64,000 bases of DNA from Dicyema japonicum. Lineage: Eukaryota > Animalia > Dicyemida. This document shows, piece after piece, positions 57,610 through 62,425 of this stretch. The position numbers and the translations under genes are program-made. The notes beneath the pieces were generated by a model. The model had not been told where the DNA came from, searched no databases, and worked only from the letters and a program-made list of their open reading frames with translations. Every line of letters starts with the position of its first letter. The first letter of the stretch is position 1. The stretch spans positions 1,908,238 through 1,972,237 of the forward strand of contig RDEW01000005.1 of the NCBI GenBank assembly GCA_011109175.1. Direction: 5' to 3'.

Positions 57610-58640
57610 ATGCTTTTCAGAACGTTAGCCTTTTTCTCGAATTCTATAATCACGTTTCCAGCAGAACTTTTAAAACATCACGTCTCCAGACAATATCCCA
57701 GCAGAACTTTTAAAACATGCCCCAGAGGAGCTAGTCAAAATGATCACCAATCTTTTCAATCGGTTTCTTCAGGAAGACAATACGTTGGAACTGAGAAAAG
57801 GGTGGCTAATACCTCTATAAAACCCGGGAAAGCTAAAGGTTCCTTTTTCAATCTTAGACCAATAATTCTACTAACTTCCATACGCAAAACACATGGTATT
57901 GATATGTCCCGTGCATTCGATTCGGTAGACAGAGAAAAACCTATGAAAGTTCTGAAGAGTTTTCTTCATCCTGACGATGTTAAAATAATACGCCTGCTCA
58001 TGCAGAACACTCATCTCTGTCAAAATGTACCTCCGACTTTTTTCCGACTTCACATGGAGATCAACGGAGGACTCTCTATCCCAGGTCCTCTTCAATGTTT
58101 ACCTGAAGCTGCATTAAGAGAGCTCAGGGCCCTGATTGGAAACAACTATGGAGCCTCTTTGGCCACCTGTTACGTCTAAATTAACAGGTCTTTGAAAATG
58201 GTGCAATGAAAAAATACTTCGCAGACACAGAAGCCGGATTCCGTGGAAGGCCAAGAACGACACTTGAATGAAGACCTATCAGCGGTTGGTATGAGACTAA
58301 CTTAGGCGGACAACTTGGACTACATATTAGAACTAGCGCGTAACAGAGGCAAAATTTAGATAGCTTGGAAGTTGAGCATAGACGCCGAGTATTGATGCCT
58401 ATTGAGGGAATGCTTTAAAAATCATTCAGTATNCAAATACTTCGCAGACACAGAAGCCGGATTCCGTGGAAGGCCAAGAACGACACTTGAATGAAGACCT
58501 ATCAGCGGTTGGTATGAGACTAACTTAGGCGGACAACTTGGACTACATATGAGAACTAGCGCGTAACAGAGGCAAAATTTAGATAGCTTGGAAGTTGAGC
58601 ATAGACGCCGAGTATTGATGCCTATTGAGGGAATGCTTTA
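57610..58640 (+). mobile_element. RTE-like RT remnant
   Basis: 'RPIILLTSIRK...GIDMSRAFDSVDREK...IIRLL'. Confidence 0.75.
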
Positions 58641-58659
58641 AAAATCATTCAGTATTGCC

Positions 58660-58965
58660 TCAAGAATTCCACCATCGCAGGCGCAAGGGAACCAAACGTT
58701 TCAACTGCAACTGGAATAAACAAAAAATCCTCGGATAGGACCGCGTACTTTGCCCGTTTCGACGTCTTGGCCTTCTCATATCAGAACAGGCTCCAGAGCC
58801 ACTCTGGTGTAGTTTGTATGGGGTGAATGTGTCAGTCCAGGTGACGTCACAGACAGGAGGTTTCCCGGCTTCAAAGTAGAAGATGGTCATCCCACCTGGT
58901 CGTTTTCCGTCTGCATAGATCGGCTGGTCGAGCACAATTAATTGTCTGATAGACGTTAAATTCAA
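58660..58965 (-). mobile_element. CRE-like REL endonuclease fragment
   Basis: 'DGKRPGGMTIFYFEAGKPPVCDVTWTDTF', homologous to about 31750-31800. Confidence 0.8.
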
Positions 58966-59044
58966 TAAATCGATTGAATGTTAAATAAATTTTGAATCGC
59001 AAGTCAATATTAATTTACGTTTATAGTCGTGATTTGTGCTTTAA

Positions 59045-60679
59045 ATGAAAGGGACACCCAAATTAGTCATTTTACTAATAAGAATGATCGTCCTTGGTTT
59101 TCTATTTGATGAAATTCTCTAGTCAGTTCATATTACACCAATTCTGTCCAAGATATAAAAAACGTCTCACAAAACACTTCAAAATACGGAATTGTCCAAA
59201 ATTTGACTTGCATTGATACCAGCAACGTGGAGGGTCTGTGCCGAGCCCCTTACTTTTGCTATAAGCTGTACGAGGGAGAAACAGTAGTAAGCATGGGATG
59301 CATCAATTCATGGGATTTGCTTGAAAACTTAGCTTACTGCAAGTTTGCAAACACCAAAACCACCGTACTCTGCTGTGACTCCTACGACTTCTGCAACAAA
59401 GGCATTGAACTCACGTTTTCAAAAACAGAGAAGAGTCTACATGATTTTAAGAGTTTAATCGCGATTGTGTCCTGTGCCGTGGTCACTGTCATATTCAGTT
59501 TCATAACAGTAATAATTGTTAATGTGCGTTCAAAGTCGAAAGTAAAAAAAGTATGGGTTGGTTGCATTTTAGGGAATGCTAAAGCTAATTGGTCAAGAGA
59601 ATCAGGCTTCAGGTTGACGATTGGGGGTTATTTAAGCGCATGTTCTGGAACCCCGGACAGTTGCTAACGAAGTGGAGCTGTTCGATAAAATCAGCAGTGG
59701 ACGCTATGGAGCGGTTTATCACGGATTTTGGAGAGGGCAGTCTGTGGCAGCGAAAATCTTCAATGAAGAGGAAAAGAGCTCTTGGCTCACGGAATTGAAA
59801 TTGATGCAAACCCAGTTTTTCGGTCACCCCAACATCCTCACATTATTCATTGCTGACAAACTGAGTATTGGGGTTATATCACCGTAGCTTCAGAAAACGG
59901 GGTACAGTATTGGCTGTTGACAGAATATCACGGAAATGGGTCACTTTATGACTATTTACAAAGGAATGAAGTTTCCAAGAGATCAATGCTGAAGATGGCC
60001 CTTTCAATAGCATTCGGTCTTGAGTTTCTTCATGCACATTTTGTGGGAGTTGATGAGAAACCCTCCATTGCCCACAGAGACATCAAGAGCAAAAACATCT
60101 TGGTCAAGAATGACCACACGTGCTGTATTGGGGATTTCGGTTGTTGGATTTAATTAAATAGGTTTATCACTTTCAAGTAGGGATTATGACGAAGAGAAGG
60201 AAAGATTGGCTAAAAGATCGGTGGGGACGATCCGCTACATGGCCCCTGAAATTTTAAGTAATGACCCTGAGTCGTACCACTTTGAAGTCGTCTTGAGTTC
60301 TGATGTTTACTCCGTTGGATTGGTTTTTTGGGAGCTTCTGTGTCGGACAAGTGTGAATCCATCAGTTCTGGGATCAGCTCTTCCCCACAATGTCCCCTAC
60401 TATGAACATATCGCCAACCCTTCGACCATCCAGCAAGCAAGGGAAGTCATATGTGAGCAAAAAATTAGACCAACATTGCCCCCTGACCATAATGATAGAG
60501 TGAGTGGTTATGATTATTTTAAGGATTTGAAAATTTTTGGAGACCTTATAACAATGTGTTGGACGCACGCTTTTTCCGCGAGGATTAAGTCGATTACTAT
60601 CAAAAAAAATATTACTAAGCTTTGTAGACAAGTTGAATTGACGAGTAGATCATGGAGTCATAATAATTTATTATTATAA
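59045..60679 (+). CDS. TGF-beta superfamily type I receptor Ser/Thr kinase with degenerate GS domain
   Basis: Signal peptide, Cys ectodomain ending 'CCDSYDFCN', TM segment, 'RTVA', 'GRYG..WRG..VAAKIF...SW', [17 protein letters not shown] and 'VICEQKIRP'; six canonical 22-26 nt introns. Confidence 0.92.
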
Positions 60680-60789
60680 TTCAAAATATTTTTTATTTAA
60701 TTTATGATATTTTTTATTAAGTGAAATCAACTCTTTGGACTGCTTGTGTTGACCAACTCCATCTTTTAATACTTCATTACAGGCTTCTG

Positions 60790-61420
60790 AAGAGAGGTGG
60801 GGAAGTAGGTCCGCCCTCTTCCATTTTTGTCTCACGTCCTACTGTCAGAATATTTGCTGCTGATTAAACCAATTGCTGTCGCTTTAGACAAAATTCAAAA
60901 TGATTCTACAACTATTAGTCATGCTTTAGAAATTTGGAGAGAACTTGAACAGACTTATATTGACTATGAATGTACGACTATTTTAGAAAAAGTGAAAACT
61001 CGAGCAGATCAAGCATTAACACCTTTCCACTTACTTGCGAATCTAATGGACCCAACACGTTGTGGGAGATCTCTTTCAACTGCTGAGATTGACCTCGCCT
61101 TGGAGTATTGTGCTGAACATTATGAATATGCTCTCCCGACTCTGATTAATTTCAGAGCAAGAGCTGATCCATTTAAGCAATACATGTTCGCTCCGAATTT
61201 ATGAGTAAAGTATCACCTATAGCTTGGTGGGAGTCGAACTCTTACCAGTTACATTCTGAAGTAATTTCACTCTGCAAAAAAATTCTTGGAGCAGTTGCTT
61301 CCACGGGTGGACTAGAACAAATTTTTTCGACTTGGATTCCTACATTCAAATGTACAAAATAGACTGGGAATTGAAAAAGCTGCCAAACTTGTCTTTGTTT
61401 ACAAGCTTTTAAATAAATAC
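60790..61420 (+). mobile_element. hAT transposase C-terminus with dimerisation domain
   Basis: 'IKPIAVALDKIQ', 'LLANLMDP', 'IAWW' and 'ASTGGLEQIFS...RLGIEKAAKLVFVYKLLN'. Confidence 0.85.
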
Positions 61421-61589
61421 GATTTCCATTGTTTTTATTTTATTTTGTTTCGGAATAAAAATCATTTAATTCAAAAAAATCTGATTTAAATTAAAAAAAT
61501 CAGACTGTTTGTGCTGGGCCTACAATGGTAAACCTGGGGTTAATAATAATAACTCTGGAGATTGAAATATTCTTTTCTACTATTTCCCT

Positions 61590-61880
61590 TCTTTAGTTCC
61601 CAAGATGGCATCATTGGATCCACCTTACTGAAGAGACTCCCAATGCTTGTTCGGCATCAAGAGGATCCACAACTCTTTCCTTGGGGACAATATCGTTACC
61701 TGTAGACAAGTTCTGGAACGCTGGAACGAGTCAGGATCAAGGAGTTAGTAAGCTTGGTCACCCTTGGTCTTTGAAATCGGGGACAATATCGTTACCTGTA
61801 GACAAGTTCTGGAACGCTGGAACGAGTCAGGATCAATGAGTTAGTAAGCTTGGTCACCCTTGGTCTTTGAAATAATTTTA
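61590..61880 (+). mobile_element. LINE 3'-end fragment with a local 96-nt duplication
   Basis: Homologous to 6440-6650. Confidence 0.65.
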
Positions 61881-61989
61881 ATTTTTTTTAAAGACGTTTG
61901 GGATCCACGCGAGGAAGGAGACGTTCTTTCATCCTTGATTCCTGAGAAATCAATATAGCCCAATAAGTTTTAACAAATTTATCCAATAT

Positions 61990-62425
61990 CAAATTTTCAT
62001 TCAAACTCATTTTAGTCGATTTTATTGAAAACAGTAATCTTTTTTGTCTCTGACCTTGTAGAGAGAACTCCAGACACTTATTAACCCTCTTCGTCCTCCT
62101 TGCCACATTTGGTTCCATCCCTCAGATATGAAGAAACAATTGTACATACAATTGTAAGAGAAAGACTCATAATTTGGGAGATCTCAGTATTGCCAAGATT
62201 ATTCTTAGCGTGGTTAATAACGAGTTCTCTGACTTTATTTGAGATTTTATGCCTTTCCTGCAGATTGTTTCTTTCATTTTCTTGGTTTTTTGATGCCGTC
62301 ATTAGAGTTGAAATTTTATTAAAACAAAATACTAAAAAATTCAGGCTATTTACTAAATTTGTTTTTAGACTGCTCCTGTATCGTGTTATTGATTGACAAA
62401 GTGTCGTTATTGATAGGAAAACACT
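61990..62425 (-). mobile_element. Tc1/IS630 5' portion with TIR
   Basis: HTH 'ISNKVRELVINH...NTEISQIMSLSLTIVCTIVSSYL', plus a TIR-like gtgtcgttattgataggaaaacactaca shared with 27280-27307. Confidence 0.75.

Follow-up and report, generated by a model that had tools for sequence, protein, structure and literature searches.

Can a type I receptor of the TGF-beta family dispense with the phosphorylation switch by which such receptors are turned on? This question is raised by one gene in a stretch of 64,000 nucleotides (nt) from the dicyemid Dicyema japonicum, a mesozoan parasite of the octopus kidney (NCBI GenBank assembly GCA_011109175.1, contig RDEW01000005.1, positions 1,908,238 to 1,972,237 of the forward strand), referred to here at its full length as the window. 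Textbooks describe how a type II kinase activates the type I receptors of TGF-beta, BMP and activin: it phosphorylates their GS loop, a step supposed to be universal. In the canonical switch, the GS loop is phosphorylated by the type II kinase, FKBP12 is released and a phospho-GS dock for Smads is formed. This step is disturbed in FOP (fibrodysplasia ossificans progressiva) and is exploited by every engineered 'constitutively active' allele. A first-pass annotation of the window had proposed a type I receptor without a GS box and with a natural 'activating' residue. Judged from its sequence, the gene is real and functional, and the TGF-beta-family type I receptor that it specifies is very divergent. 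The best explanation overall, to which we give a probability of roughly 0.55, is a maintained type I receptor that lacks the GS phosphosites and has a probably unlocked kinase. 'Constitutively active' and 'type II-independent', the two terms under which the annotation had placed it, remain inferences.

The first step is to establish that there is a gene to interpret. A three-frame reading of positions 58000-62000 resolves the locus, at 59045-60679 on the forward strand, into seven exons and six introns that encode a predicted receptor of 497 amino acids (Table 1). The introns measure 26, 22, 24, 23, 22 and 24 nt in order, each runs GT..AG, and they carry stops or frame shifts; once they are excised, a 497-codon frame stays open between the ATG (59045) and the stop codon (60677-60679). 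The predicted product has, in order, a signal peptide, a cysteine-box ectodomain, a single transmembrane (TM) helix, a short juxtamembrane segment and a full kinase domain. The juxtamembrane splicing proposed in the first-pass annotation, with introns of 22 and 24 nt and a joined reading after KSKVKK, was reproduced exactly from the DNA. The acceptor at 59636 is supported because type I homology begins directly after it, and both juxtamembrane introns match the remaining four introns of the gene in size and ends. Since the 22- plus 24-nt model alone yields a GS region of canonical length, this is the best support at hand for the predicted mini-exon between them.

Four DNA runs of one sample provide independent contigs that follow the locus colinearly, introns included, and show no indel within the gene. 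They differ from the window at 17 single bases over 1.9 kb. Thirteen of these differences are coding, 10 synonymous and 3 non-synonymous (Q43K, V138I and C480Y), which corresponds to a ratio of non-synonymous to synonymous polymorphism (pN/pS) of 0.08 (binomial p = 3e-5). The kinase exons contribute 5 synonymous differences and 1 non-synonymous, and in exon 2 six of the seven single-nucleotide polymorphisms (SNPs) are synonymous or conservative. This pattern indicates that the gene is under purifying selection. A ratio of 0.08 therefore argues against a pseudogene, and it independently backs the reading frames of exons 2, 4, 6 and 7.

The next step is to ask on which side of the receptor family the protein falls. 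In phmmer searches of PDB sequences, exon 4 scores 55.7 bits with its best type I match and 29.4 with its best type II match, exon 5 scores 91.7 bits with ALK5 and 70.6 with the best type II sequence, and exon 6 scores 69.3 bits with ALK5 and 46.2 with the best type II sequence. Type I thus leads by 21-26 bits across these kinase exons, with type I E-values from 3e-14 to 2e-25, and ALK5 is the top match of the two larger ones (exons 5 and 6). Exon 4 aligns ungapped to ALK2, ALK6 and ALK5 at E ~3-6e-14. For a wider comparison, kinase domains were drawn from 860 relatives of exon 6, 67 of them type I-like and 7 type II, the type II anchors being checked by best PDB matches to ActRIIA/B and by one AMHR2 name. 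With profiles of equal size, the kinase core minus the GS remnant reaches 300-315 bits for type I and 267 for type II, a margin of 33-48 bits, and true type II controls score the opposite way by 24-72 bits. In a maximum-likelihood tree, the kind of check that the first-pass annotation had suggested, no grouping with type II receptors was found: the type II clade leaves out the Dicyema protein with support of 100/100, and the protein sits within type I on a very long branch beside other long branches, with weak support.

Motifs point the same way. The predicted receptor carries several type I-only features, namely the RTVA helix, a two-residue insertion in the activation loop (A-loop), the HFE insertion, PYY, CEQKIRP and a C-terminal IKK. 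Per-exon scores, profiles and these motifs agree with the type I-like kinase described in the annotation, and its statement that the kinase motifs are intact also holds, as the VAAK Lys, alphaC Glu, HRD, Asn, DFG and APE are all present. Its remark that DFG is a type II trait does not survive the comparison: 19 of the 67 type I relatives have DFG, which is no type II mark. Identity as a type II receptor is ruled out by the profiles, the tree and the type I juxtamembrane helix and insertions. The protein is not a BAMBI-type pseudoreceptor either, since its kinase is complete and has every catalytic motif. Among the 860 relatives that an exhaustive search with exon 6 brought up, none exceeds 45% identity and no dicyemid orthologue is present; the library searched also lacks the Dicyema protein itself. 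Within the window there is no paralogue and no type II receptor gene.

What, then, has become of the GS region in this type I receptor? In local alignment, the stretch from KVKK to RT aligns ungapped with 12 canonical receptors, so that the GS region keeps its canonical length. This refines the first reading, as the region has been substituted rather than deleted. Both GS helices leave traces, an LKxLI-like one of the first and RTVA of the second, and PRTVA aligns ungapped to the QRT(I/V)A of ALK2, ALK5 and ALK6. The changes at the acceptors, in ALK5 numbering, are T185I, T186G, S187Q, S189N and S191A, and the FKBP12-docking pair L193-P194 has become Ala-His. The annotation's claim that the SGSGSG acceptors and the FKBP12-binding Leu-Pro are lost is therefore correct, each residue being replaced within an ungapped alignment. 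An exon-by-exon Pfam search gave no match to the TGF_beta_GS domain, and an SGSGSG-like run is absent from every reading frame of 59480-59700. Without closing the frame, 388 combinations of GT..AG sites are mechanically possible, and 0 of the 388 gives a GS loop. A hidden or alternatively spliced GS exon is ruled out, because only ~85 nt lie between the TM and kinase exons and no frame there encodes SGSGSG. With the acceptor residues and the FKBP12 dock absent, the canonical GS switch cannot operate. That this is a real type I receptor without GS phosphosites is, on present evidence, very probable.

At this point a simpler account has to be weighed, according to which the locus is mis-assembled, mis-modelled or a pseudogene and a canonical, GS-bearing receptor lies elsewhere in the genome. 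The juxtamembrane introns are predictions only, the 388 open combinations leave room for other models, and artefact-like duplications lie close by in the assembly. An artefact is nevertheless very improbable, as the contigs of four DNA runs reproduce the locus without an indel, no splice-site combination creates a GS loop and no frame encodes one, the 22- plus 24-nt model alone restores the canonical GS-region length, and the gene combines a 497-codon open frame with a pN/pS of 0.08.

If the switch is gone, is the kinase still held in its inactive state? By HMMER, the alphaGS2 remnant aligns ungapped to ALK2 LVQRTVAREITL (Q207E crystal form, 6eix) at E ~3e-14. This alignment bears out the annotation's placement of an Asn at the column of ALK2 R206 / ALK5 R203 and of a Glu at that of ALK2 Q207 / ALK5 T204. 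Three further columns of this 'lock' are altered, ALK2 R258 to Gly, G328 to Glu and the A-loop R375 to Ser. In ALK2, R258, G328 and R375 help to hold the kinase inactive (PMC3481300; 10.1101/170837): the A-loop R375 acts as an 'electrostatic lock' (10.1101/170837) and R258 buries the GS loop, with such roles also described in the ALK2-FKBP12 structure paper (PMC3481300). The exon 6 alignment sets the Ser opposite ALK5 R372, in the ALK2 R375 column, which is R/K in 55 of the 67 type I relatives and Q/E in type II receptors. The Glu in place of G328 is the same residue as in the FOP allele G328E. Deviation at all five lock columns is found in only 2 of the 67 relatives (P0133 and P0127).

Because five inactive-state columns are replaced while all catalytic residues are kept, the most likely state of the kinase would be an unlocked one. 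The five-column pattern is suggestive evidence for this, and no proof. That the kinase is intrinsically unlocked and would need no GS phosphorylation comes close to an even chance. In a receptor of this type, 'unlocked' would be the default state of the kinase, as it is in type II receptors; clustering driven by ligand, or the place and time of receptor expression, would determine signalling, and the L45 loop would be the only means of recognising Smads. Carried over to the whole pathway, dicyemid TGF-beta signalling might run via a GS-phosphorylation-free, intrinsically open type I receptor gated by ligand clustering or expression, possibly without type II receptors and without gating by FKBP12. 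This larger picture is tentative, and we consider it somewhat doubtful.

Several observations weigh against reading the protein as a type I receptor with an unlocked kinase. To begin with, the 'natural activating residue' is not special: of the 67 type I relatives, 17 have D/E at the Q207 column, many of these together with a GS loop that is intact, and in one of them, P0044, the identical Asn-Glu pair stands beside TSGSGS. An acidic residue that is frequent beside intact GS loops need not mean constitutive activity, and Glu at Q207 as a unique activating residue is ruled out by these 17 relatives. The acidic residue occurs in 7 of 11 relatives without a GS loop versus 10 of 53 with one (Fisher p = 0.005); in phylogenetically independent pairs the trend is not significant (median p = 0.625), and no claim is made that an acidic Q207 column evolved together with loss of the GS loop. 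The deviation at all five lock columns (p ~0.015, in a post hoc test) is a weak pattern because the protein departs non-conservatively at 43% of moderately, that is similarly, conserved columns. An Arg lies one residue ahead of the R375 column (KRSVGT) and might stand in for the lost lock arginine, and near the loop both the RT Thr and a Ser, in the column of ALK5 G192, persist. The protein is also the most divergent of the set, matching the type I consensus at 44% identity, and the first Gly of its glycine-rich loop (G-loop) has become Ser (GxGxxG to SxGxxG). The approximately unbiased (AU) test does not reject a basal position on the internode between type I and type II (delta lnL 33.2, p = 0.157); the type I assignment stands despite this result because of the type I-only characters listed above. 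Finally, both juxtamembrane introns, and expression of the gene, are matters of DNA-level prediction.

Such divergence could belong to a receptor that signals weakly or not at all and serves as a scaffold or ligand sink; its kinase would have drifted while selection acted on ligand binding or complex formation. No type I kinase domain is more than 40% identical to that of the Dicyema protein, the G-loop is degraded to SxGxxG, and the L45 loop ADKLTSENG matches none of the Smad-specificity loops compared with it, ADNKDNGTW, ADIKGTGSW and SDMTSRNSC. The phospho-GS docking surface for Smads is lost as well. Yet a drifted kinase is hard to reconcile with the retention of every catalytic residue (Lys, alphaC Glu, HRD, Asn, DFG and APE) or with kinase-exon differences of 5 synonymous to 1 non-synonymous, and decoys of the TGF-beta receptor family such as BAMBI go without a kinase altogether. 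A non-signalling receptor is thus improbable.

The extracellular half of the protein bears on a third alternative. The ectodomain comprises ~105 residues with 8 Cys, including a box CCDSYDFCN at 59371-59397; it matches Pfam Activin_recp at 19.2 bits (E = 0.0025), below the cutoff of 20.9, and against PDB sequences it gives chance-level matches only. The TM helix, read directly from the sequence, is a 22-residue hydrophobic stretch (59455-59520) followed by the basic RSKSKVKK, and only ~6 residues separate it from the GS region. The cysteine box is kept and constrained, which would imply that ligand binding still matters. As an observation apart, were intron 2 retained, the frame of the TM exon would gain 39 codons before meeting a stop at 59665-59667; this reading of the frame would give a kinase-less, membrane-anchored, BAMBI-like product.

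A kept, constrained ectodomain would be expected if dependence on a type II receptor had been preserved by another route: residual juxtamembrane Ser/Thr (those of RSKSK, the NQAS Ser and the RTVA Thr) or else the activation segment might be phosphorylated by the type II kinase instead, or allosteric contacts between kinase domains in the receptor tetramer that ligand assembles might suffice, the GS loop having been rewired. Ser and Thr do survive in the segment that joins the TM helix to the kinase, conservation extends to the Thr of RT (ALK5 T200 column), and TGF-beta ligands are encoded in the genome. Oligomerisation of kinase domains has reportedly been described as an activation route for ALK2/BMPR2, which would favour the same view. 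According to the discussion of one paper, the FOP mutant R206H still requires the type II receptor, as a scaffold (PMC5865211). What speaks against preserved dependence is the extent of the loss, as all five mapped acceptors are substituted, the FKBP12 dock is gone, and four to five inactive-state contacts have disappeared, beyond what a rewiring of phosphosites needs. We regard this route as unlikely, if far from negligible, and continue to prefer a maintained receptor without GS phosphosites whose kinase is probably unlocked.

The genomic setting is compatible with a small pathway. The D. japonicum genome holds only two TGF_beta-domain genes, with no recognisable propeptide domain; this fits a pared-down pathway and is silent on the presence of a type II receptor. 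The supplements of two dicyemid genome papers contain no counts of receptor, GS or Smad domains, and the papers themselves do not discuss TGF-beta-family receptors. The G+C content of the window is ~36%, and the D. japonicum genome has been described as having 36.7% G+C and extremely short introns (PMC6736024).

Why such a receptor would matter follows from how deeply the GS switch is embedded in current thinking. The searchable literature yielded no account of a type I receptor in which the GS phospho-acceptors are naturally missing. A natural, selectively maintained receptor with intact catalytic motifs and erased acceptors would be a ready-made experiment on the mechanism minus its switch. 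It raises the questions of what the default activity of a type I kinase without the GS switch is, how Smads are recognised without a phospho-GS dock, and what purpose the type II receptor then serves. It would also help to read the minimal developmental toolkit of an animal of ~30 cells.

Table 1. Exons, introns and key codons of the predicted type I receptor gene (positions in the window)
Feature	Position	Strand	Content
Exon 1	59045..59096	+	Start codon and most of the hydrophobic signal peptide; joins exon 2 in frame after removal of the 26-nt intron
Intron 1	59097..59122	+	26 nt, GT..AG; in-frame stop inside; its excision brings frame 1 into frame 3, as needed
Exon 2	59123..59550	+	Ectodomain (8 Cys), TM helix, basic stop-transfer stretch RSKSKVKK
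Intron 2	59551..59572	+	22 nt, GT..AG, ending ATTTTAG; predicted
Exon 3	59573..59612	+	40-nt mini-exon; alphaGS1-like MLKLI 59576-59590; GS-loop equivalent IGQENQAS 59588-59611
Intron 3	59613..59636	+	24 nt, GT..AG, ending ATTTAAG; two in-frame stops; predicted
Exon 4	59637..59864	+	alphaGS2 remnant 59642-59671 and kinase N-lobe, G-loop SSGRYG
Exon 4, VAAK Lys codon	59753-59755	+	Key codon
Exon 4, alphaC Glu codon	59792-59794	+	Key codon
Exon 4, Asn codon	59666-59668	+	Lock codon, ALK2 R206 column
Exon 4, Glu codon	59669-59671	+	Lock codon, Q207/T204 column
Exon 4, Gly codon	59822-59824	+	Lock codon, R258 column
Intron 4	59865..59887	+	23 nt, GT..AG; within the L45-loop region; one SNP at 59878
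Exon 5	59888..60139	+	Hinge, alphaE, Glu at the ALK2 G328 column 60055-60057, HRD 60073-60081, start of DFG
Intron 5	60140..60161	+	22 nt, GT..AG; splits the Gly codon of DFG
Exon 6	60162..60499	+	Activation segment, Ser at the ALK2 R375 column 60218-60220, APE, HFE insertion, PYY, CEQKIRP 60452-60472
Intron 6	60500..60523	+	24 nt, GT..AG
Exon 7	60524..60679	+	Kinase end, type I IKK motif 60599-60607, short tail, stop codon

Repeats lie on both sides of the gene. Upstream, at 58190-58635, two tandem copies of a 223-nt unit are 96% alike, and their junction falls on the sole N of the region (58413); this duplication looks like a gap-closing assembly artefact rather than biology. Downstream of the receptor gene, at 61683-61873, there are two tandem 95-nt copies, 99% identical and spaced by 96 nt. 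Between these, over 60740-60800, the word depth of the contigs rises from ~20 to more than 4000 in three DNA runs; in the remaining run it goes from 315 to ~148,000. Numerous short contigs terminate in this interval, their loose ends diverging, and ~60 nt past the receptor stop codon a very high-copy repeat begins. The 105-codon open frame directly after it (60887-61204, forward strand) matches no Pfam family and could be a remnant of a mobile element, and the open frame at 58660-58965 on the reverse strand matches no Pfam family either.

How does the Dicyema protein compare with receptors that are already known? Its closest counterparts are vertebrate and invertebrate type I receptors from the TGF-beta/activin branch, ALK5/TbetaRI and the TGF-beta type I receptor of Pinctada (P0061), which have the same architecture and are its nearest tree neighbours by path length. 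ALK5-type receptors share with it RTVA, HFE, PYY, CEQK(I/L)RP and IKK. Compared with them, the Dicyema protein has no TTSGSGSG and no FKBP12-binding Leu-Pro, its A-loop Arg is a Ser, it has DFG for DLG and its L45 loop matches none of the class sequences compared, at an identity that does not exceed 40%. Type II receptors (ActRII, BMPR2 and TbetaRII) share other traits with it, as they too have no phosphorylatable GS loop, carry DFG and lack the A-loop lock Arg/Lys. Their kinases are constitutively active. Unlike the Dicyema protein, they are devoid of the RTVA helix and of the type I insertions.

A second point of reference is provided by activating alleles. ALK5 T204D is constitutively active, and most activating ALK2 and ALK5 alleles still respond to FKBP12 and require a type II partner. 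The activating or FOP alleles of ALK2 include R206H, Q207E/D, R258S, G328E/R/W and R375P (PMC3481300). They change the same five columns as in the Dicyema protein, where the residues of Q207E and G328E are found identically and the others are comparable losses of Arg. The alleles are single changes in receptors with an intact GS loop, whereas the predicted Dicyema receptor would combine such changes naturally and without a phospho-loop.

The closest natural precedent is DAF-1 of C. elegans, a type I receptor that is reported, in the discussion of one paper, to signal even where the kinase activity of its type II partner DAF-4 is lacking, for which differences in the GS region of DAF-1 may be responsible (PMC5865211); the likeness is one of description and not residue by residue. 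Predicted type I-like receptors with a degenerate or absent GS loop were also encountered in Rotaria magnacalcarata (CAM4805785, P0007), Panagrolaimus superbus (A0A914YS73, P0048) and Suberites domuncula (BMPR_SD, P0088). In Hypsibius exemplaris (OQV23184, P0009), an acidic run, SDTDSDTDSD, takes the place of the GS loop; this run might be a built-in phosphomimic or a CK2-type site. Several of these SGSGSG-less predictions from a bdelloid rotifer, a tardigrade, nematodes and a sponge also carry D/E at the Q207 column. All are automatic, unstudied predictions of other phyla and are not closely related to the Dicyema protein; they have 37-39% identity to the Dicyema protein, most of them keep R/K at the A-loop lock, and none deviates at all five lock columns. 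Taken together, these sequences suggest that the GS loop may have been lost several times in small or fast-evolving animals. If this is true of the dicyemid receptor and of its GS-less counterparts in rotifers, tardigrades, nematodes and a sponge, the 'obligatory' type II-to-GS switch would be a step that miniaturised or fast-evolving animals have dropped repeatedly.

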